This document shows positions 1,600 to 26,150 of a stretch of DNA of 64,000 nt, piece after piece. Under the pieces are notes generated by a model, which did not search any database, was not told where the DNA came from, and saw only the letters and a list, made by a program, of their open reading frames with translations. Position 1 is the first letter of the stretch. Every line of letters begins with the position of its first letter. The position numbers and the translations under genes are program-made. Location: NCBI RefSeq assembly GCF_000143415.4, contig NW_003314331.1, positions 666,114 through 730,113 on the forward strand, read 5' to 3'. Source of the stretch: Selaginella moellendorffii (lineage: Eukaryota > Plantae > Lycopodiophyta).

Positions 1600-4500
1600 A
1601 TTAATGTTGGCCCAAGAACAGATTGTGCCCTGCACTTAAAATGTGTTAGTGAGAGAGAAGCTAAAGAAGAATTAAGGTTCTAGGGAAAAATCCATTTGAT
1701 GGCACTTATGTTTATGGTTAAACTTTAAGCCACACTTTCAAATAAAACTACTCAAAAATCTGGGGTTCTGCCAGGTATTTCTTGCAGAAAACATCATTAG
1801 AAGCCTTGAGTTGTTTTTTTTCCAGGTCATGGGAGACGAATCAAATTTAAAAATGTGGAAGACAAAAATGCAGCCCTTGAGTCCCTTGTAGCTAAGGAGG
1901 AAAAACTTCTAGTCTAATTAGTTTTGAAAGATTTGTGTAAATTTTTTAGTTTTATTGATAGAATATAAATGTATAGCATACTTCGATAATCATTGCTTAA
2001 CTAAGCTATCAACAATTATATCATGCTTAAAATGATCACAATATAATTACTATAATTTATTTGATTATTATTATATAGTTACTCAAAGAGTTCATTGTAG
2101 AGTATAATACCAAGTCATTAATCTAAAATAATCTTGGAACTCTCACCAAAAACCTAATTCTCTTCTAATAAAAGCTTTTAGAATTCTTAATTATATCATA
2201 TATTGATCAATTGAACTAATAAGTGAATAATTTTTTAAGGTTAGGTTTTTAGATATAATATTTTAAATATGAAAGTTCATTGATGAATTTCTATATTATA
2301 AATCTATGTAATGCTCTATTGGATTAATTACTTCAATGCCATAGGACATGGATTTGTGAGTGCATAGAATATATATCAAAATCTTACTATGTTAATATTA
2401 ATATATGCCATCATAACCATATATTTGAACCTTACATCATCTCTTTTTCTCATAAGGATGGAATGTAATTAAGGTTTTTTGGTTGATAAATTAGAATCTA
2501 GAAGAACTTCAGGAGGAGGTATCAGTGGATCTGTATATGGTGTAATTTATTCCTAATCCCTTTGTATGAAGCACTTCAACCATTATATATATGCATAATT
2601 TCTAAAGGATTGATTTATTGAATATCATGCCAAACTTCATAAACTTGCAATCTAATTTATCACCACACTCAATATGGTCACTTTAACTAAGTAAAGAGCC
2701 TTTTAGACAAATCACGTATTATATGATTGAGAAAACAAACTAATAGTAAGTCATTTATTTTGTACTTTACAGGTGGATGCCAATAAGAGTTATAGCACCA
2801 TTGTTATCTCACTTGTATGCAACCAAAGTGTTTTAACAAACTCTATTCAAACAAGTAAAAGAATGCTCATCAAATATTTTTCCCAATATCTAAGCTCATG
2901 ATAATTGTGAAGGTAAACTCAACTCCATTAAAAGTATTACATCATGATTATATAAAAGTTTATATAGTGAAGTATTAATGAAACTTTGAACTCTTGTAAC
3001 ATACACATCCTGAAGAAATCATCTTAATCTAAATGTTTAAAGTTTAAATATTTTGTGATCATTCATTTGAAGATCCAAATAAGCCATTCCACTAAACCAT
3101 CCATCTAAGCACTCTTGATAGTGTGGCATATCTCTAGCCTAGATATTAAGATGTGAATGCGTCAACCATGAATGCAAGATCATTATCCGAAAGAATCTAA
3201 TTAAGGAAGAAATATCCAATAGTAGTCACTGATGCATTAGCAAGACCACTAACTTTCACCTAGCGAGTCAAGTAATTGGAAGCAATAATGATATATTCTT
3301 TGTGAACAATTGAACATGGAAAAGGCCCCATTAAATTCAAATGCCATTAAATTCAATAAGAGGAAGTAAATTTTACTCTACACTTTGTGGATATTGAACA
3401 TTAACTATAATAATTACTAACAATATAGAATCCTCGTCTAGAAATGACACTAATGCTGGAATAACAGATTTGTAAAGAACATGAAAAGAGAGCAAAATAA
3501 AAAGTAGAACTTGGAAAAGGGCATTAGCATTAACTATACAACTCCCTTAATGATGAATAACCTCAAAATTATATATCTAAAACTTAAAAGTCCATTAAAC
3601 CAACCATATGAAGTACCATAGCATGATTATCTTTTAGTAATGTCTGAGAACCATGCAAATATCCATGAAACAAATTGTTACTAAATATTCATTCTTTATT
3701 ATAAAGTAATTTATTTCCACTGATTATAATGTATTACTCATATATACAATAAGATAACACTGAACAAATATATTTGTGCTTTTTTACATCAACACATCTC
3801 TTAAACTAATATCAAAAACATCCACATACAAAGTAAAAGGACAAAGTGTAATTAGGATACACTAAAATTAAAAGAGTTATCAATAGCTCTTTCAGATTTA
3901 AAAGTGCTATTTTGCAATCTTTAAACTTGATGAAAGATGATATTGATGGCTTTACCAATACTTATAATTGTGCAGTATGATATAAAAAATGATCAATAAA
4001 ATAATTGAGATATTACATTTTACCTAAAAAGTATTGCATATTATTCATACACTTTAAGTAGAGAACTTTATAACAATTAAAAGTTTGTCAGAATTAACTT
4101 TCAAATTTTCACAAGAAATATAATACCTAAAATAAATTATATCTTTAGATCCAAATATACACTTTGATTGCTTTAGCTTTAAACTAAATTCGCACAATCT
4201 ATTTAACACCTTGCAAACATTACAAATGTGCCCTTCTTACATCCCCTATGAGTGCATTAAGACATCATCAATAAATTCACTAATCACTTTTGGCATGTCG
4301 CAAAAACCCTCATTCGCTGGAAAATTTGCCAAAACATTGTTCAAATTTAAAAGCATCACTAACTTCTACAAATCAAATGATGTACAAAAAACAATTTTAG
4401 GAACATTTGTTTTAGCCATTGACATTTACTAACACTTTAAAAAAAAAATTAATTTGATGAACCAACTACTTTTCTAAAAACAATCTAGAAAATTAGTAAT

Positions 4501-4860
4501 GTGAGGAAGAGGGTACACATTCAAGATAATCACTTTATTTAACTGACAATAGTTGATATAGAATCAAATACTCCATAGGCTTTGTTATAAAATAATATTT
4601 ATATGTTTAAAGATTTTAAGACTTTTGGATAATACCCTTCTTTAGCATCTCCTTGACATTTGCAAAAAAAATCTTTATCTCCTTTAATGATTGATGTTGA
4701 ATAAGAATTTTGATTGAACAAGCTTACTTATAATGTTACTTCATTGATAATCAAGCCATTGTGATTTTTATATATTATTCTAGTGATTGTGAGCAATGTG
4801 TTTACGAAATTAATTACTTAAATGATAATTAACCCCAAAGTGCTTAATAGTGATGCTAAT
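1600..4860 (-). mobile_element. Heavily decayed Ty3/Gypsy pol (RT-RNaseH-integrase order)
   Basis: Minus-strand remnants include RT K(T/I)(A/V)FCT-like sequence near 4390, integrase WHLNLMGPF near 3335 and DGLVEW near 3090. Many stops; very AT-rich. Boundaries approximate. Confidence 0.7.
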
Positions 4861-4889
4861 TAGTATCTGTGCCAATGACAAAAGCACAG

Positions 4890-6135
4890 TTTCCAACAGT
4901 ATACTATAAGCTTGTCTTCTTCAAAGCCAGCTCAAAAGAAGATGTCATCACAGATGATATCAGAGTACTAAGAACCACACCTTCTTGACCACACGCATGA
5001 GCCTGGCAGTTGAGAATGATCTTGCCTAGCCGTGGCTCCACTCTAACCTTGGCCAGTTTTAATACGAAGTTCATGAGCCTCTAGTTCTTCACTTCATCAT
5101 CCTTAGCTATGGCTTCCAACCACTACAAACTCATCATTGCGTGACTGATAGCACTGACGCTGGGAGGCTCCACAAAGATGAAGTTTTCCACATTAGTGCC
5201 AGAAGCTTGAGAACTACTATCCCCATGTGCAAACGGGAAATTTCAGAAGTCCCTAGCAGCAGACACTAGAACTAGCGTGCCTTGCATGACCAGCTCTTTG
5301 AGTCACAGAATTGCCATAAGCTCCAACATTATCATCCCAGTCTGTGAATCAAAGATGGCTTGCTTTGACAATCCTGGATCCACCTAGTAGCCGAAAAAGT
5401 CAACTACATGGTTCAAGGAAGATCATTGTAAAAGTACCTGATTCCTGGTATCGTCAAAGACATCTCGGCGATATTTGTTGCAAAGACTATCTTTCTCGTA
5501 CCAGCTGGTGCTGCCTCGAATACCAGTTGCTGATCCTCTTGACGAAGCCTTCCATGAAAAGGCACCACAAGCGTACATGGCATATTTGCCAGTCGCCCAT
5601 TCGATATCCGTTTGGGACTTGAAAAAAGCTATATCCCCGTCATCAGCGTCCCTATGGAGCTCACAAACTCTTGTCCTTGTTACATGGTTGTCGATGTTGG
5701 CATTCCTGCGCAGTTCGTAGTGGATCTCAACTGGGTACTTCCTTCCAGGAACGACAAGTGTTCGATGCGAAAGTAGTCGCTGAAAAGTTCCGCATTGGCT
5801 GTAGCTGGCATGATGATGAGTCTCAAGTCCGACCATGCACGCATACATTCCTTCAGTACTGCTAGGAGTAAATCGATGCTCAGGCTTCGCTCGTGTGCTT
5901 CATCCACCACAATGCAGCTGAACCAGTCGAGATTTCTAGTCGAGAGATAAAGTTGAAGCAGTACGTGATCCGTGGTGTAGACCATTTTGGCAAGGTCCTG
6001 TTGATCCCTGTATAACAAGGTGCCAATGGAATTTATCTTCTCGTAACAGCCGTGGCATCCTTTGGCAACCCGTCGAGTAAGAGCAAAAGCTGCTACTTTC
6101 CTTGGCTGTGTACAAAGGATGGACTTGAGAAACAA
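4890..6135 (-). pseudogene. DEAH11/12-like RNA helicase fragment (frameshifted)
   Basis: CTQPRKVAA, VVDEAHERSL, ATANAELFSDYF, GRKYPVEIHY and FVEPPS motifs are spread over several frames with stops. Confidence 0.8.
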
Positions 6136-6427
6136 CCATCACATAAATATTGAACGAGTTGAGTGCTCTTCCCAGACTAATCAACACAGTAACCTATAGA
6201 TTAATGCAAAGAAACTAGATGATAAAAACTTCTGGAGGTTCAGGCCAGAAATCAGTCTTGCTTCTTGCGGGGACGATCGCTTCCAGCTCCAGCGAACCCT
6301 AAAACCCTGGGAGAAAAACGTTTGAGCGGGAACATTATAGCCTCTAGTGTCACGATGGTTTAATTTCCAAGGTCTAGATGCCTTCTATTATTAAACCTTT
6401 CCACTCCTATCTATTTTTACTTTATTT

Positions 6428-7374
6428 TCATTCATTCATTCGTATACTGTTTAGCAGAGAAGCATACTCAAACTCATCCAGTTCTCCTTTGCTCTTCAAT
6501 TCTTCAATCAATGCTTCATCTGCAGCTGCATACCGGTTATACCCTGGAGGCATTTCTTCCTTGGATTTGTATAACTCGAAGCCTAGGCCTGCGTTGAGAA
6601 ATCCATCGAGTCCCTGAAAAGCTTCCCAGATTTGAGATGCAAGAGGGCAGGGTGGCCGAGGCACAATGAAGATTCCCAAGTCTGGATGTTTTTTGCAGAT
6701 CCGTTTGAGGTTTTCGTATTCAATCCGTTGGACGCAGAAACGAGGATGGTATTGCGGGAAGTCTGCTACCTGAACGATATAACCCACCTGAAAACGTACA
6801 CAAGTAAACATACAAAGAAACAGAGAATAGAAACTGATACAAACATCAAGAAGAAGTCTCTTCATTGGTCCAGTGTAAGTCCTCTCTGCCCAGTCCTCAT
6901 TTCGCAGGGGATCTCTTGAACAGTGATACGTATCGTGTCCCTTCGCTAGGCAGAGGTAGCATTTCTTTTGTTCATGAGCAAAAGGATCCACTCCAGGCTA
7001 AAACAAAAAACAAAGAGTCAAAAATTCAATAAGTGAGTTTTCTTACCCCCTTGCAGTGTCTTTCCCAATGACCTCTCTGCTTACATTTTCTGCATTGGTC
7101 GACGAGTAATCCCTCCTTCTCACCGGGACGATGAGTTCCTATGATCTCATACCTGTTACAAACAAAAGCAAGTAAACATCAAACCATATAAGCTTGCTTA
7201 CCTTGCTTGCATACGATCGTAATCGTCCTCGATTGCAAAAGTGTCCACCTCCTTCGGCTTTTCCTTTGCGAACTTCCTGTTGCTGCTGCCGCCGTCGTAA
7301 GCCTTCTTGTGCTGCCCGTTGCTGCTGTTGCCGTCATAAGCCTTCTTGTACTGCCCGTTGCTGTAAGCCTTCAT
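6428..7374 (-). CDS. Four-exon protein with two CCHC zinc knuckles and an N-terminal KKAYDGxSSNG repeat (copy 1)
   Basis: GT-AG splicing joins MKAY...MQAR / YEIIG...CRKCKQRGHWERHCKG / PGVDPF...CYLCLAKGHDTYHC / VGYIVQVADF...RMNE* in frame. TATATATA lies upstream at ~7470. Confidence 0.65.
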
Positions 7375-15644: not shown

Positions 15645-17329
15645 CCATGGTGGATAGATACTCCACACAAGAGGAAGGACGTACGCATGGATGCCCAATA
15701 CGTACGATTTCAAATTTAGGGGTAGGAATATATCTTGCTCAAGGGTATATTATACTTTTAAGTAGCCACTAATAAATGGGAATCAAACCCGTGCCATTTG
15801 CTCCGATACCAACTGTAGCGCACCTTATCTCTCTCCCCTTAAGCCAACTGGAAAAAGGGCAATTGCTTGATGAGAGAGCCCTTAGTGGCTATTTTATCCC
15901 CATTTATCCCCCAAGGTTCCAAGGATCCATGGTGACAGTATATCCAAATCTCATCCCATAATCACATGCGCTACAACATGGATGTCCAATACATATGATT
16001 TCAAATTTAGGGGTAGGAATATACCTTGCTCAAGGGTATATTATATTTTTAAGTAGCCATTAATCAATGGGAATTGAACTTGTGCCATTTTCTCTGATAC
16101 CAACTGTAGCGTACCCTATCTCTCTCCCCTTAAGCTAACTGGAAAAGAGGCAATTGTTTGATGAGAGAGCCCTTAGTGGCTATTTTATCCCTATTTATCC
16201 CCCAAGGTTCTAAGGATCCACGATGACAGTATATCCAAATTTCATCCCATAATCACATGTGCTACAAACATCCTTGGGTTTGAATAATACTAGGCTGGGT
16301 GACCTCTTGGGAAGTTCAAATTTAGAAACTTATAAATAGTTCTTTCAAATTTACAAGTGCCCTTTTGCAATCTTTAAACTAAATAAAAAATGATGTTAAT
16401 AACTTCAGTAATGCTTACAACTGTGCAGTATGATCAGAAAGATAATCAATAAAATGACTGAAATATTACACCTTATCTAGAAAGTATTGCACATCATTTA
16501 TACACTTTGGAGTATAGAACTTTATAACAACCACAAGTTTGTTATGATCAACTTTCAAATCTTCACAAAAAATATAGTATCTAAAATAAGTTATATCTTT
16601 AAACCCAAACACGCACTTTGACCTCTTTAGTTTCAAACTAAATTCCCACAACTTATTTAACACCTTGTAAACATCACAAATGTGCTCTTTTTACATCCCT
16701 TATGAGTGGATTAAGATATTATTGATGAAGTCACCAATCACTTTTAACATATTGTAAAGAATCTTATTTGCTAGAAAATTGCTAAAACATTGTTCAAATT
16801 GAATAACATCACCATGAACTTGTATAAATCAAATAGTACAAAAAACAATTTTAGGAACATCCTCTTTAGCCATTAGCATTTGCTAACATCTAAAATCAAA
16901 ATTTAATTTGATGAACCAATTATTTCTCTAAAAACAGTCTAAAGTGTGAGGAAGAAGGGATATATTCAAGATAATCACATTGTTTAACTGACAATAGTTG
17001 ATGTAAAATCAAATACTCCCTAGGCTTTATCATAAAATAATGTTCATATATTCTGAGACTTTTCAATAATACCTTTTTCTAATATCTTTTTGACATTTGC
17101 ATATATAATCTTTATCTCTTTTAATAATTGATGCTAAATAGGAACCTTGATTGGACAAGCAATTATAATGTTGCTTAATTGATAATCAAGCCATTGTGAT
17201 TTTTATATAATATTCTAGTGATTGTGAGCAATGTGTTTACGAAATTACTTACATAAATGATAATTAACCCCAAAGTGGTTAATAATGATCTTGCAAAAAG
17301 CATCTATGCCAATGATAAAAGCACAGTAT

Positions 17330-18533
17330 ACTATAAGCTTGTCTTCTTCAAAGCCATCTCAAAAGAAGATGTCATCACAGATGATATCAGAGTACTAGGA
17401 ACCACACCTTCTTGACCACATGCATGAGCCTGGCAGTCAAGAATGATCTTGCCTAGCCATGGCTCCACTCTAACCTTGGCCAGTTTTAATCCGAAGTTCA
17501 TGAGCCTCCAGTTCTTCACTTCATCATCCTTAGCTATGGCTTCCAACCACTACAAACTCATCATTGCGTGACTGATAGCACTGATGCTGGGAGGCTCCAC
17601 AAAGATGAAGTTTTCCACATTAGTGCCAGAAGCTTGAGAACTACTATCCCCATGTGCAAACGGGAAATTTCAGAAGTCCCCAGCAGCAGACACTAGAACT
17701 AGTGTGCCCTGCATGACCAGCCTTTTGAGTGGTAGAGCTTTAACTGATTGCCATAAGCTCCAGAGTTATCATCCCAGTCTGTGGATCAAAGATGGCTTGC
17801 TTTGACAATCCTAGATCCACCACGTACCTAGTAGCTGAGAAAGTGAGTATCAACTACATGGTTCAAGGAAGATCATCATAATCGTTAAAGATGTCTCAGT
17901 GATATTTGTTGCAAAGACTATCTTTCTTGTACCAGCTGATGCTGCCTCGAATACCAGTTGCTGATCCTCTTGACGAAGCCTTCCATGAAACAAGCGCGCA
18001 TGGCATATCCGTCTGGGATGTGAAAAAAAGCTATATCTCCATCCTCAACGTCCCTATGGAGCTCACAAACTCTTTCCATTGTCCTTGTTACATGGTTGTC
18101 GATGTTGGCATTCCTGCGCAGATCTCAACTGGGTACTTCCTTCCAGGAACGACAAGTGTTCGATGCAAAAGTAGTCGCTGAAAAGTTCTGCATTGGCTGT
18201 AGCTGGCATGATGATGAGTCTCAAGTCCGACCATGCACGCATACATTCCTTCAGTACTGCTAGGAGTAAATCGATGCTCAGGCTTCGCTCGTGTGCTTCA
18301 TCCACCACAATGCAGCTGAACCAGTTGAGATTTCTAGTCGAGAGATAAAGTTGAAGCAGTACGTGATCCATGGTGTAGACCATTTTGGCAAGGTCCTGTT
18401 GATCCCTGTATAACAAGGTGCCAATGGAATTTATCTTCTCGTAACAGCCGTGGCATTCTTTGGCAACCCGTCGAGTAAGAGCAAAAGCTGCTACTTTCCT
18501 TGGCTGTGTACAAAGGATGGACTTGAGAAACAA
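17330..18533 (-). pseudogene. DEAH11/12-like helicase fragment (duplicate of 4890-6135)
   Basis: CTQPRKVAA, DEAHERSL and LKLAKVRVEPWLGKIIL motifs; frameshifts. Confidence 0.8.
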
Positions 18534-18809
18534 CCATCACATAAATATTGAACGAGTTGAGTGCTCTTCCCAGACTAATCAACACAGTAACCTATAGATT
18601 AATGCAAAGAAACTAGATGATAAAAACTTCTGGAGGTTCAGGCCAGAAATCATGCGGGGACGATCGCTTCCACCTAAAACCCTGGGAGAAAAACGTTTGA
18701 GCGGGAACACGCCAAAAACAGTAACCTTTATAGCTCTCTAGTGTCACCCCGATGGTTTAATCTCCAAGGTCTAGATGCCTTTCCACTCCTATCTATTTTT
18801 ACTTTATTT

Positions 18810-19767
18810 TCATTCATTCATTCGTATACTGTTTAGCAGAGAAGCATACTCAAACTCATCCAGTTCTCCTTTGCTCTTCAATTCTTCAATCAATGCTTCA
18901 TCTGCAGCTGCATACCGGTTATACCCTGGAGGCATTTCTTCCTTGGATTTGTATAACTCGAAGCCTAGGCCTGCGTTGAGAAATCCATCGAGTCCCTGAA
19001 AAGCTTCCCAGATTTGAGATGCAAGAGGGCGGGGTGGCTCAGGCACAATGAAGATTCCCAAGGCTGGATGTTTTTTGCAGATCCGTTTGAGGTTTTCGTA
19101 TTCAATCCGTTGGACGCAGAAACGAGGATGGTATTGCGGGAAGTCTGCTACCTGAACGATATAACCCACCTGAAAACGTACACAAATAAACATACAAAGA
19201 AACAGAGAATAGAAACTGATACAAACTCCAAGATGAATTCTCTTCATTGGTCCAGTGTAAGTCCTCTCTGCCCAGTCCTCATTTCGCAGGGGATCTCTTG
19301 AACAGTGATAAGTATCGTGTCCCTTCGCTAGGCAGAGGTAGCATTTCTTTTGTTCATGAGCAAAAGGATCCACTCCAGGCTAAAACAAAAAAAAAACAAA
19401 AAACAAAGAGTCAAAAATTCAATAAGTGAGCTTTCTTACCCCCTTGCAGTGTCTTTCCCAATGACCTCTCTGCTTACATCTTCTGCATTGGTCGACGAGT
19501 AATCCCTCCTTCTCACCGGGACGATGAGTTCCTATGATCTCGTACCTGTTACAAACAAAAGCAAGTAAACATCAAACCATATAACCTTGCTTACCTTGCT
19601 TGCATACGATCGTAATCGTCCTCGATTGCAAAAATGTCCACCTCCTTCGGCTTTTCCTTTGTGAACTTCCTGTTGCTGCTGCCGCCGTCGTAAGCCTTCT
19701 TGTGCTGCCCGTTGCTGCTGTTGCCGTCATAAGCCTTCTTGTACTGCCCGTTGCTGTAAGCCTTCAT
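18810..19767 (-). CDS. Two-zinc-knuckle protein (copy 2)
   Basis: Same exon structure as 6428-7374 with a few substitutions; frames remain open. Confidence 0.6.
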
Positions 19768-20222
19768 TTTCGGAAAGAAAATGTCCAGAACCAACAGGGA
19801 GCTATAAGAGTCCGTTCTTGTCCTGCGGTATTGAAAACCAGCTTTAATTCATCATGTGTATCGAGGATCCCTTACCTGGACAATACTATCAAAGATAGCC
19901 TTGAGGAGAGCTTTGGAACGCGATGTAGGTACCAGATCGGCAAGAATTCCTGTAGCAGCCTGCTGCATTGAAAAGATACGATGGAAGACCGTATCACGGA
20001 GGGCCTTGAGGAGCGATGTAGCTCCGTGCAACACGATCACAGGCGACGGCAATCGGAGACGAGATTCTGGCGATTACTCACTCTTAGCTAATGTGGACCG
20101 CCAAACCCTAAACTTTATACCAAGTATATTTTTAAGTATCGACAGTGTAAAATCAAACGAACGGCCACTGCTGTTCCCGCTGCTGTGGAACGAAAACTAG
20201 TTAAGTCAGTTATATGTTATTC

Positions 20223-22567
20223 TTATAAAGGTGGTGGATGTCTAATGTTACTGGCTTGCTCTAGAGCGTATGCTATCTCGATAAGAACACCCTCGGAGCC
20301 TTTGTTTCCCAGGAAGCAAATCCCAAATGGAAAACCGGTGGGAGGAGCGTAGCCTGCGGGGATCGAAATGGCAGGATATCCGGCGATGGCTGCTGTGAGC
20401 GAGATTGCCGACACCGCAGTTGGAGCCACCAGCGCGTGGAGATCGTGCGTCTGGAGCAAGTAATCGATCCCATTCTCCGTGAGGAACTTGTTCCTTGCGA
20501 GAGCATCTTTGTATGCTTGCGACTGTTGATCCTCTTGCCGAGCTTGAGCTTCGATGAATACATCTTGGCCAAAACGATCTAGTTTCTGCACAGTTTTGTG
20601 TAAATTTTAGAGTTTTTTCAGCGGTTCCTACCTCGTCTGTGTGTTCCTCGTTGAATCTAATCACGTCCTCGAGGCTGCGAACTTTGCTTGTGGTGAGCTC
20701 GGACAGATACTTCTGAAGATCATGCTTGAAATCGATTTGTAGCACCAGATCCTCGTTCTTTGTGCTCACGATCTCTTCAGCGTTAGGCAGCTCCAGATCC
20801 TTGACAATCACTGCTCCTCTAGCTCTGTCCCAAAGAAAGAAAAGAAAAAAAGAGCAAAGATTTCAAAGCATGAACGAGGATACTTAAAACCCAGTCACTC
20901 ACATTGCCAGAGAAAAGAGTTTCTCCATATCACCAGAAATCTCGTCGATGACAAAGTATTTTCCAGCAAGCACGCCCAGCCTCTTCCCGCGAAGACCATC
21001 CCTTTTCAGAAACTGCTTGTATCCTCCTCTGGGAATGTATGCAGCCGCGGCAGTAGTAGCACTGTCGAGATCATCTACACCAACGATCACGTCAAGAACT
21101 TCGACCGCATCTTTCATGGTTCTGCAAATCGGCCTGCGATAATCCAAGCGTTAAAAGCTGTAAGCTTTCGTGATCATAACTTCTTGATTACCCGACTGAG
21201 TCCATATTATGCGAGAGCGGGATCACTCCCGCTCGGCTCGTGAGTCCAACCGTGGGCTTGATCCCGACGACTGCAGCAAAACTGGCCGGGTTGATTATCG
21301 ATCCATCGGTCTCCGTCCCGAGAGTGACTGTAGCCATGTTTGCAGAAACTCCGACTGCGGAGCCGCTGCTGGAACCGAAAGTTGTTTGGACTGGATCATA
21401 TGGATTCTGTTTTCAACAACAATCGCAAGATCAGAAATGAAAAAAAGAATCAGCTTATACATACCATGGTTTGTCCACCACGGGGACTCCACCCATGCGG
21501 AGCTTCTGTAGATCTGAAATACATCCACTCGCTAAGGTTGGCTTTGCCGAAGATGATCGCACCGGCGTCACGTAACTTCTTCACAACGCCAGCGTCTCTT
21601 GGAACAATGGAATCGACCAGAGCCAGAGATCCAGCCGTGGTCTGGAGCTTGTCCTTCGTGGCGATATTGTCCTTGAGAAGAATTGGAATGCCGCGCAAGC
21701 CTACGACAGAACAGAAAAAAAACACACAGAAAAATATCACAAAATTATATAAACTGAAATGCAAACCTTTGCAACTCTCGGCTCCGTGTTGTTTCCTGTA
21801 AGTATCGGCTTCATTGGCGAGCTCCAATGCGTCGGGAGACACCTCGATCACGGCTTTGAGCTGGGGATTCAGCCGCGTGATCCGAGCAATGTAAAACTCC
21901 ACCAGCTGTTTTGATGTTAGAGTTCCTGCTTTCAGTGCTTCTTGAATGTCTTCCACAGTGGCTTCTTCGATTGGGAATTGTGGAGTTGGAACAATACCGT
22001 CGGGCTCAAAGCTTCCAACCATTGTAAGCAGCACACGATCTTCACCATCTTTTCCTTGGATCTTTTGCAAGTCACACTTGAAGTCACCTTCTAGCATGCT
22101 GTACATTTGCGGAAGCCATCAAATATCAATCACACACTTCTTTGAAGCGAGCACTTACACTCTGGTCCCAAACTCCTCCTGGATAATGGCCCTCAAAGTT
22201 TCAGCATAATGCACAATAACCTCTCGAAACCTTCGGAAAAACAGAGATAAGAAACAGAAAGGAAAATGTTTTCGGAAGTGAAAACCATGTACCTGTAGAT
22301 TGTTGGGTCTTGAATGATCCCAGGAGCCAGTGAGCGAAATGGGATGACTTCCATGGCCCGAATGAGCTCGTCAGAGAGTGTAGGAACCGCCATTTGCAAA
22401 CGCTGGGCTTGCGCTCTACAAAGCGGTGCCTGGCGGTGAAACAATTGAGCAGCATATAAATTCGTGACACCCATCTCTTGGGCAATCTGGTTGAAGCTCT
22501 TCCCTGCATTTTGCTTGGCTTCCAGAAGCTGCAGCACAAGCTCCTCTTTTCTCACATCTGTAGCCAT
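20223..22567 (-). CDS. Cyanase-like domain fused in frame to an amidase-signature enzyme (8 exons, 638 aa predicted)
   Basis: Exons 22567-22293, 22230-22159, 22098-21767, 21700-21465, 21406-21192, 21133-20903, 20824-20632 and 20585-20223, all GT-AG and phase-consistent (1917 nt). The N-terminus aligns by eye to plant cyanase (GKSFNQIA.E.G.TNLY.AQL..RQA; DPTIYRF.E; EEFG; DF.C...KI.G.DG.DRV). The amidase motifs LLKDNI, GKANLSEW, GSSSGSA, GTETDGSI and GIKPTVG are intact. Confidence 0.88.
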
Positions 22568-22738
22568 AGCCCCTAAGTATTGAGTGTCTAGGGCTCGTCA
22601 AGTTATCCAGGGAGTAGTATATAAGATAGTTTAGGACAAATACCCTGGTTAAAAACTTTAATCATAAAAGGCTAAATTACAAACTACTAAATTAATAAAG
22701 GGTAAAGGACTTATGTCTTGAAAAATGACAGACAGAGC

Positions 22739-23609
22739 TTAATCCTCAGCTTCGGTAAACTGAGCTTCTATGTAGATCGACTCAGTGTTCTCTTCTCCTT
22801 TCTCAATCATGGAAACCTTAAATTGAGCTAAATGCTCATCACCTGCAGCAAAACAGTATATGCATAAGATAAAAATTACTATTTAGTATCATCATGTACC
22901 AAATGTGATTGAGCTGCCTGGGGGAACCGGAGTGACAGCTCCAGGTCTCACTCTCCTGTTATTAACGAAGGTCCCGTTGGTACTGTCTAAATCAGTTACC
23001 ATAAGCATCGAATCTCTCTTCTCAAGCCGGGCATGTAATCCAGAAACTAAAACAAAATTGAGACGAAGAAATTACACAATATGAGAAACAATTACCTGTT
23101 CCAACTGGAATTACAATGTCTGCCTTGTCAGCCACACGTCCCACCGTGGCAGCATCCTATTAGCAAGATCAAACTCTAGATTATCAATCTAAAGTAGACC
23201 TCATCAAATAAAAAAAGTAGAGAGGTCATGGTTTTTAACTTACAGTAGAGAGCTCAAATGCACTTGGCAGAGGAACTTCTTCGCCTATGTGGCGGCAATC
23301 ACCATCTCCTACACCCATTAAAATCTCATCAAAGAAAAGAAGAAGAAAGTCATGAGAAACACTGCTATTCTTCACACCTATGGGCTCGAGAAGCCATTTC
23401 GTGTCCACAGCAGCGGCAGCCAAAAGCCTCGCAAAACTGGAGCTTCGTTGCCAAATCCGCGTTTCCCTAGAATGTGTTTGCACCAAATTTACATTCAATC
23501 CAATCGCTCCACCTCCACAGTGATTCCAAAGCGCGCGCGAGGAAGGCCACGACGAGGGCGCCACTGGCGGCCACGCCCGTGCATTTAGCTGCTGCATCAA
23601 AGCCGGCAT
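22739..23609 (-). CDS. FHA-domain protein with probable plastid transit peptide
   Basis: Spliced WLLEPIG/DGDCRHIG, TVGRVADKADIVIP, VSGLHARLE, VTDLDSTNGTF and GDEHLA, typical of the plant small FHA protein family. Confidence 0.85.
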
Positions 23610-23999
23610 TGTTCCAATCTACAGATTTTCACCTTATCTTCAGGCATCAAATACACGCCTACATGGCAAAACACGTGGCAGATATAGAATCCGAGCGTCG
23701 ACCGGAGGTTATCACTGAGCTGTGGAGGTCACAAAGCGGCTCATAAGCTGTCCTCTGTAGAGGGCTCCCGTTTTCCTGCTTAGATGCGAGCAAACTTAAG
23801 AAGCCATAGAACTAAAGTTTAAGATTATAGTCTGAACGTTGCGACAGCATTTATGTCTATGTTGGTCACTCTCTGGTGAAAGTAGAGATCTGTTAGTATG
23901 AGAAGCACATAGCTTGATGTGCAGGAAAACAAAGCGTCAAATCAAATCACAGTAAGAACTAGCTAGACCGGAGATCCTGACCGGGAAGAATTCGCAGGT

Positions 24000-26150
24000 A
24001 CAACAGCAAACACACGAAATCCTGCTTTCAGGGCGTCCCTGTAGATAGGAGCTAGTGGGAATATAAAAACTCACTTGCTGGTGAGTTCAGATAATTGTTC
24101 GACTCTTTTCCAAAGACTCTGACGTCTCCACTTCTCCTCAGAGGCCATTACGAGAGCAGCTACAAAGAGAACGAACTACAAAATTTAAGTTCTTATCGTG
24201 TACGCAGCGATCGACCTCCAGATTGCATTTGTCTGAGCCAGAGATTATCAGGAGCCCGGCCAGCTCCTGGTGGGATGAGGATTGTGCCTGCACGCACAAA
24301 AGATATGCCTATGCCCGTTGGCAGAAAGCCCAGCCACTAGAAGTGGCTCAGTTGAGAAAAGCCTTTCAGCGTACAAGCGCCACAATCCCAAATAGGCATA
24401 TAGGATATTCAAAAAGCCCACCTGCAAGACAAAAAGATTTGGGAGCATCAACAAACCAAATCTGGAAAACTTCCCTGGAACAAGAATCTAGACTTCATCC
24501 CGCTGGAGTCGGGATGACAGCAATGGGTGTCAGATGCCCTCACACCAATCATCAATCGCCTCTGGAACACAGGCCTGGACAGTTAACAGAGTCGTGCCCA
24601 TACACAAAAGGGGAGATGTAATGCTGCTGACCAACTATTGAACCGTTGCAGTCTCCAGCATCTTCACGAAAATCTTTGTGAAACAAGTTGGAAAAAAGTA
24701 TCAGCATGGGCTGAGGAAAATCAGATCCTGCAAGAGGACAAGCAAGCTTCCGTACGCGTAACATCACGATCACGTGTTAATGGAACACACCAGACTGGGG
24801 TGGAGCAAGGTGCTCATCTTAGGCTTTGTAGATTTTGCTCAGTCATTTGACTTGGTCCCGCAAAACTTCGGAATTGATCAGCTCCTCCAATTGGAGGCAC
24901 CCACTCCACTTGTTGCGGTGATTGTGGAGTTGTACAGGATAGTGAAACTCTAGATGTTTGCAGGGGATACAGTCCCTTCAACTATGGGAGTTTGACAAGG
25001 CTGTCCCTTGTCACCAACCCTCTTCTTAATCTAAATTGGCGCACTAGAGACAATGATCCAGGGAGAGAATTTCACAATATACCAACTTTCTGGGATGTAT
25101 CTCTTTCTGCTATGCTGATGACTTCTTTTTAGCGGCACTAAATATCACAACCATACAACACTTGTTTGACACACTTGCACATTTTTGCATGCAAGCGGGC
25201 ACTCTCCAAAACACAGATTATGATCTTTGGCAATCCCCCACTCACACATGTCTCTACAATGGCAAACCAGTGCGAGCATACAAATACCTTGGCTACACTT
25301 TACATCGCCAGGGACCTGGACACATGGGGTCAAAGAGAGTGAAAGCCGCACAATTTGTCTATTATAGTCTCTAATTGGATTGCACAATAATGTTGTGACT
25401 AGCTAGAAGGCAAAACGAGCATTCTATTTTGCCAAGGTTTGAGCCATATGGGATACCTCAACATCCAATTCATCAACCACGAGTTCCAGGTGTGGCTGCA
25501 ATCTTGGTCCGAGAAAGTGGTTTACTGCCACTAGAGATCTTGGCATCGAAGAGGACCATTGTTCTTGTGAAAGCCTCTGGAAGAGATCGTTGGCCTCTCA
25601 AGCAATGGAAGATTCCATCAGCCTCATGTATAAGTGAGTTGGTGGCTGGTGGCACAAGTTAAAGGCATGGACCGAATCTCTGGTTTGGATCTAGAACTGA
25701 TTGTTTCCGATCCATTTGACGATTATCCAGTATGGATGAACCAGGCCATACAACATTGGTTAGCATGTATAACTGAGGGCACCACAAAATATGCCATATA
25801 CTGGGTGACACTTGGATCTCCCTGTGGCTCCATGGATATGCACAATCCTTGCTACCTACAGCTGTGGAGCACACGGTTTACAAGTGGAGTTTCGATGACA
25901 CACTAGGCCACATATCTCTTGAGAGCACTGTCTATGCCAGCAATGTGACCCTGGTCAGGTGGAGGTGTTCTCTATCAATGCCTAACATCTACAGGACCAG
26001 ACACCCCTCCCCTGGCAGCAGTGGGATCAAGCATCCATACTTAGTGATGGCCATTTGCAGCAAATCACATGGTACCTCCAGGACCAGACAACCAAGACTA
26101 AAGAGACTAAAGGGAAGGAGCAATGCATTGCATTCATGTAGATAGAGTCC
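24000..26150 (+). mobile_element. Decayed LINE (non-LTR) reverse transcriptase region
   Basis: Remnants FVDFAQSFDLVP (~24825), GV*QGCPLSPTLF (~24990), LCYADD (~25110) and YKYLG (~25280). Boundaries approximate. Confidence 0.8.

Follow-up and report, generated by a model that had tools for sequence, protein, structure and literature searches.

The question raised by this locus is whether the cyanase-like domain that its gene joins to an amidase still works as a cyanase, has taken on another role, or is carried along without any function. The gene lies in a 64-kb stretch of Selaginella moellendorffii DNA (the window, to which all positions refer unless another sequence is named). A preliminary description of the window had called the domain a pseudo-enzyme, or an anion-binding domain of altered specificity, retained under selection.

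Gene Structure and Transcripts

The gene is coded on the minus strand at 22567..20223 in eight exons, which sum to 1917 nt (638 codons and a stop) with the splice sites read from the strand. Its seven introns are 46-66 nt long and have GT..AG borders. The translated 638-aa gene model is identical to RefSeq protein XP_002985952.2 (P0151), annotated as 'probable amidase At4g34880', and XP_002984896.2 is encoded by the allele of the second haplotype (locus L001), where the fusion gene has the same structure. When exon 1 was compared with 1.84 billion representatives, the cluster with these two proteins was found to contain older split gene models as well.

Exon 1 (22293..22567, minus strand like all the others) encodes the N-terminal helical domain of a cyanase, aa 1-91, and the first 2 nt of the Arg92 codon; Pfam CYNS_N matches it at 2-69/69, and PDB cyanases align over 8-91. 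Exon 2 (22159..22230) has 72 nt, encodes aa 92-116 with R92, E95, and FGTRV where FGDGI is expected, and is matched by Pfam Cyanate_lyase at 12-32/69. Exon 3 (21767..22098) encodes the remainder of the cyanase C-domain and, after a linker of eight residues, the first part of the amidase, with MLEGDF (Leu118 at 22094-22092), GSFE at 22016-22005, and FPIEEAT from 21977 as landmarks. Cyanate_lyase at 5-30 and Amidase at 65-102 were both found by Pfam in this one exon translation. Exons 4 (21465..21700) and 5 (21192..21406) encode the amidase signature domain with the catalytic Lys236 at 21674-21672 (Pfam Amidase E 1e-20) and, respectively, GSSSGS (Ser317/318) and the nucleophile Ser341 in TETDGSI at 21301-21299 (E 1e-21). 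Exons 6-8 (21133-20903, 20824-20632, and 20585-20223), with joints taken from the contigs, complete the C-terminal part of the amidase and end with the stop. The codon of Arg92 in YRFREV is split over intron 1 (22294, 22293 / 22230) and that of Val116, between FGTRV and MLEGDF, over intron 2 (22160, 22159 / 22098); YRFREV and FGTRVMLEGDF are motifs of the spliced peptide and are not contiguous in the DNA.

All seven introns are matched exactly by spliced contigs from four public runs of four studies, for which the run type RNA was guessed. The contigs of these runs lack every intron and show processing, not transcript starts or expression levels. A single spliced contig of 2028 nt covers 20142-22584 and both halves of the gene, and one mRNA thus joins the cyanase-like domain to the amidase. 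In two runs the joint at intron 7 seems to be shifted because of a G/C difference (E518Q), which also distinguishes the haplotypes. That two adjacent genes were wrongly merged in annotation or assembly is very improbable. The v1 genome annotation does have two models here, EFJ13130 and EFJ13129, and contigs alone are no proof of a single transcript, as an internal start giving the amidase alone is compatible with them. However, a single exon contains both the end of the cyanase and the beginning of the amidase, separated by about eight linker codons and no stop, the structure is identical on both haplotypes, and spliced contigs from the four studies run across the junction. The fusion is independent of the splice calls, because both domain matches share the exon 3 translation.

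Upstream, the minus strand at 22740-24575 carries an FHA-domain gene, whose counterpart on the other haplotype (L001 3993-5828) encodes 354 aa. On the downstream side, a region with a small zf-CCHC-type gene is present in two copies of the same orientation, at 3864-7364 and 16273-19757. Identity to the haplotype counterpart is about 88% for the distal copy and 97.6% for the proximal one, and the arrangement resembles a local segmental duplication. Between the haplotypes, the exons of the fusion gene differ by 0.8% and its flanks by 2-8%.

Amidase Part

Residues 156-636 align end to end with the peptide amidase Pam of Stenotrophomonas maltophilia (PF01425; 5AC3 and 1M21, also 1M22) with E about 1e-101, reaching 3e-102 with 5AC3, and share its triad and GSSSGS. 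The motifs of amidases are present (the lysine of LLKDNI, GSSSGS, and the serine of TETDGSI), and the Lys-cisSer-Ser triad K236, S317/S318, and S341, already noticed as intact, is conserved with seven plant relatives. Identity to land-plant amidases of the At4g34880 type is 53-59%; the unfused Selaginella paralogue P0323 is in the same range. The rate of the amidase half is not accelerated. The Arabidopsis member of this amidase family is uncharacterized (PMC8393822).

Among the best amidase relatives listed, PF02560 is absent. Inspected by eye, 10 of 12 relatives have a hydrophobic signal-like leader ahead of FxIxEAT. Where plant At4g34880-type amidases carry this short leader, the fusion protein has instead a polar, cyanase-derived domain of 150 aa; from this replacement, the protein would be expected to stay in the cytosol.

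Cyanase Fold and Remodeled Catalytic Site

Residues 1-148 of the fusion protein represent the full cyanase fold, with both subdomains over their full length, as in CynS and plant CYN (EC 4.2.1.104; PF21291 and PF02560). A cyanase ends after about 160 aa, whereas this domain is joined to a 480-aa amidase. In HMMER, residues 8-148 were aligned to Serratia and E. coli CynS chains including 6TV0 with E 1.4e-19, so the resemblance is not a matter of chance; the alignment has a single gap, which is compensated and precedes the catalytic region. The N-terminal five-helix CYNS_N domain was recognized at PF21291 2-69/69 with 16.9 bits, which is below the cutoff for exon 1 alone, and the C-terminal Cyanate_lyase PF02560 is present both in precomputed matches on the whole protein and in exon-wise matches. 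The AlphaFold2 model, computed for the cyanase-like domain alone as a monomer from 88 sequences, has pLDDT 90.3 and pTM 0.82, with helices H2-H86 at pLDDT >90. The best 18 PDB matches of this model in Foldseek are all cyanases, with TM 0.74-0.76 over 143-151 columns.

According to the HMMER alignment, R92 and E95 correspond to R96 and E99 of E. coli CynS, L118 to S122, E119 to A123, S145 to K149, and E147 to L151. A set of 121 canonical cyanases (120 listed matches and Selaginella CYN) was used for comparison. The catalytic pair R92 and E95, both in columns 100% conserved in this set, is kept, as are G113, M117, G131, G134, R137, and G144; the reading of YRFREV as retaining Arg and Glu was therefore right. 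The catalytic Ser of GDGIMSAI is absent, with Leu118 in the place of S122 as previously described, and the change is wider than this one residue. In GTRVMLEG, six of the eight loop residues are replaced (D114T, G115R, I116V, S118L, A119E, and I120G). The change of the terminal GKYL to GSFE is also real, although it lies at 22016-22005, just outside the interval 22030-22300 first assigned to the domain; the motif GKxLP reads GSFEP here, with K145S and L147E. Positions D114, G115, I116, S118, A119, K145, and L147 are 100% invariant in the 121 cyanases and I120 is 99% conserved, and the residues that replace these eight were seen in none of the 121 proteins. Position 114 is Thr in the haplotype of the window and Asn on the other. 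L151 is among the residues targeted in E. coli mutant structures, and 2IVG reads GKYGP.

Single-residue changes are known to be destructive in plant and fungal cyanases. Activity was lost in AtCYN S117A and E94L (0.04 vs 2.29 U/mg), which formed no decamers (PMC3070753), S127T and R101K of the Thermomyces lanuginosus cyanase TlCyn were dead, and its A128V lost 77% of activity (PMC7801690). By analogy with these single-residue mutants, canonical cyanase activity of the fusion domain has very probably been lost, which favors the pseudo-enzyme of the preliminary description. A still-working cyanase would find support in the retained fold, R92, and E95, but it is hardly credible when conservative exchanges of Ser to Ala in AtCYN or to Thr in TlCyn already abolish activity and Ala to Val costs most of it, while this domain has Leu for Ser, Glu for Ala, and changes at four more residues of GDGIMSAI as well as at K and L of GKxL.

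Stand-Alone CYN and Origin of the Fusion

A canonical CYN gene, expected elsewhere in the genome by the preliminary description, was found on GL377705.1 (locus L002) with exons 4001-4278, 4335-4406, and 4463-4571. It encodes YRLNEAV, FGDGIMSAVGFF with FGDGIMSA intact, and NGKFLP, and the Arg, Glu, and Ser are thus all present. The RefSeq protein XP_024522171.1 (132 aa, 'cyanate hydratase-like') omits the 72-nt exon 2 (L002 4335-4406) of this gene (L002 4001-4686). Bordered by canonical GT..AG sites, the omitted exon codes for 23 residues, among them the catalytic Glu. The full CYN gene looks like that of a normal cyanase, and the shortened RefSeq model probably reflects either an error of annotation or a minor isoform.

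Introns 1 and 2 are at the same codons and in the same phases in the fusion gene and the stand-alone CYN, and exon 2 is 72 nt long in both. These shared features point to a duplication of CYN at the DNA level. In the maximum-likelihood tree, the two fusion alleles are placed within the land-plant CYN clade, in a polytomy with the CYN of Selaginella, Marchantia, and Adiantum; a sister relation of the duplicate to Selaginella CYN is not resolved by this tree. The fusion stem is 2.19 substitutions per site long, against 0.46-0.58 for its neighbors. Between the fusion domain and CYN, pS is 0.75 and saturated while pN is 0.33, which argues that the duplicate is old and did not drift freely for most of its history. 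A pairwise dN/dS against the stand-alone CYN was unusable because dS is saturated.

No other cyanase-amidase fusion was found when residues 1-150 were compared with proteins 351-1116 aa long from 5.8 billion clusters, nor when exon 1 was compared with the 1.84 billion representatives at any length, where the two Selaginella alleles were the only ones; other Selaginella species are poorly represented in these databases. The next nearest matches of exon 1 and of residues 1-150 are ordinary cyanases with at most 56% identity. A transcript of Acetabularia acetabulum (P0007, 371 aa) has a cyanase domain at the C-terminal end of a longer protein (residues 216-371). The loop of this domain is altered to FGDGNLSSADFF, NGKFLP is changed to NAKFEP, and Gln takes the place of the invariant Tyr ahead of Arg. 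The domain might represent a further degenerate cyanase module of independent origin. RefSeq already contains the Selaginella fusion protein, and Pfam matches are recorded for it; the literature search for a cyanase-amidase fusion or a Selaginella cyanase found nothing relevant, and no paper describing the protein was found.

Evolutionary Rates and Polymorphism

The two halves of the cyanase-like domain differ in their rates. Mean identity of the fusion to canonical cyanases is 0.458 in the N-half and 0.429 in the C-half, while genuine cyanases have 0.48-0.53 and 0.59-0.70 to the same set. At positions conserved in at least 90% of cyanases, the N-half keeps 22/24 and the C-half 11/24 (Fisher p = 0.0013). 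In Tajima relative-rate tests with three outgroups, changes on the fusion and CYN branches were 19:3, 17:2, and 13:4 for the C-half (p 0.0006-0.03), and 12:6, 8:11, and 10:8 for the N-half (not significant). The catalytic half evolves 4-8 times faster, and the N-terminal helical half at the normal cyanase rate. Judged from these comparisons, constraint has been released or shifted only in the catalytic and oligomerization half.

The haplotypes differ at 16 exonic and six intronic positions of the fusion gene. Nonsynonymous and synonymous differences (Nei-Gojobori, two haplotypes) are 12:4 for the whole gene (omega 0.93), 6:1 for the cyanase-like domain (omega 1.73), and 5:3 for the amidase (omega 0.53). 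Three of the five nonsynonymous changes of the amidase fall in one two-codon cluster, which inflates their count. This cluster at 20941-20946 (codons 440-441) has three substitutions in six bases, DE to KD, and looks like a single multi-nucleotide event. Variants in further accessions are exclusively nonsynonymous (A39V, Q246K, T404V, and D566N), and with a further accession the count for the cyanase-like domain becomes 7N:1S. With 6-7 of 7-8 changes nonsynonymous, omega <= 0.2 was rejected (p 0.01-0.02) and omega = 1 was not, but the omega of this domain rests on seven changes, too few to prove neutral decay, and polymorphism inflates it. Present-day purifying selection on the cyanase-like module is not demonstrated by the seven changes between the haplotypes. 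As its polymorphism is nearly all nonsynonymous (7:1) and includes the formerly invariant D114, constraint on the module may be weak at present.

The claim of retention under selection stands in part. For the long term it holds for the fold and the N-half (pN 0.33 vs pS 0.75, 22/24 positions kept, normal rate); it is not borne out for the remodeled site, in the 4-8 times accelerated C-half, nor for the present day (6:1, omega 1.7). A dN/dS near 1 had been proposed as the mark of neutral decay, and the haplotype omega of 1.7 nominally agrees with it, but on seven changes.

These data are also those by which a pure passenger has to be judged, that is, a functionless stretch of cyanase origin whose residues drift neutrally and whose frame survives solely because any stop or frameshift in it would destroy the amidase encoded behind it as well. 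The haplotype dN/dS of 1.7 (6N:1S, or 7N:1S with the further accession), for which omega <= 0.2 but not omega = 1 is rejected, the Thr or Asn polymorphism at D114, and the occurrence of the fusion in one species are all compatible with such a passenger. However, a long neutral history would have erased the signals of constraint and fold, while pN is 0.33 despite saturated dS to CYN, the N-domain keeps 22/24 conserved positions and is no faster than true CYN, and the predicted fold still has pLDDT 90; in addition, the polymorphism data overstate omega. We consider the passenger rather unlikely.

Probable Role of the Cyanase-Derived Module

The best explanation overall, and a probable one, is that a live amidase carries a pseudo-enzyme module derived from a cyanase. 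In the Selaginella lineage, an old DNA-level duplicate of plant CYN would have become the 5' part of a gene for a Pam/At4g34880-type amidase. The third exon of the duplicate would then read directly into the mature N-terminus of the amidase and displace the hydrophobic leader. In the 638-aa product, the amidase is presumed to be the working enzyme, and the cyanase-derived module would have kept its fold, with the N-terminal helical half under normal constraint. Because the substrate-binding loop (GDGIMSAI to GTRVMLEG) and GKxL are rewritten, cyanate should not be hydrated by the module and a decamer is probably not formed. The role of the module is most likely that of a non-catalytic N-terminal part, serving for example in dimerization, solubility, or cytosolic retention of the amidase, and cyanate detoxification would fall to the separate intact CYN gene.

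A neofunctionalized module, in which the rewritten loop binds some other small anion or carbamoyl compound and forms a two-step or regulated enzyme with the amidase, is improbable. Such a site could be made up of R92 and E95, which are retained, together with the new Arg115 and Glu119, the substitutions are clustered in the substrate loop while the fold is kept, the acceleration is limited to the C-domain, and the PDB relatives with the amidase signature include allophanate and biuret hydrolases. However, a dead site under relaxed constraint would be expected to show the same clustering of changes, polymorphism persists in the loop (T114N), and conserved orthologues are missing. Among solved structures, the nearest relatives of the amidase are peptide amidases and not enzymes of the carbamate pathway, and a cyanase site needs several subunits of the decamer, which the Ser and Glu mutants do not form (PMC3070753). 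The specific proposal that R92, E95, R115, and E119 make the module a new binding domain for small anions or carbamoyl compounds that regulates or feeds the amidase is equally to be met with strong doubt; if it were true, the protein would be a cytosolic two-domain nitrogen- or cyanate-related enzyme unique to spikemosses.

For the preferred reading of a pseudo-enzyme module on a live amidase, Toc64/OM64 is a comparable case, as its amidase domain is most probably without enzymatic activity (PMC8393822). In both, an apparently non-catalytic domain derived from an enzyme is kept in a larger protein for a non-catalytic role, which for the fusion is a likely rather than an observed one. In contrast to Toc64/OM64, the dead part of the fusion would be the cyanase and the live part the amidase.

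As far as the searches show, this is the sole cyanase-amidase fusion among billions of predicted proteins. Being limited to one species so far, it is a species-limited curiosity rather than a new enzyme, and no cyanase activity should be credited to the gene by automatic annotation. It would be a clear case of a cyanase that has become a pseudo-enzyme and persists as a dead domain within a fusion. As a natural experiment, it suggests what can be retained of the cyanase fold without catalysis, with the helical N-domain constrained and the catalytic half released, and it offers a handle on the uncharacterized At4g34880 amidase family.
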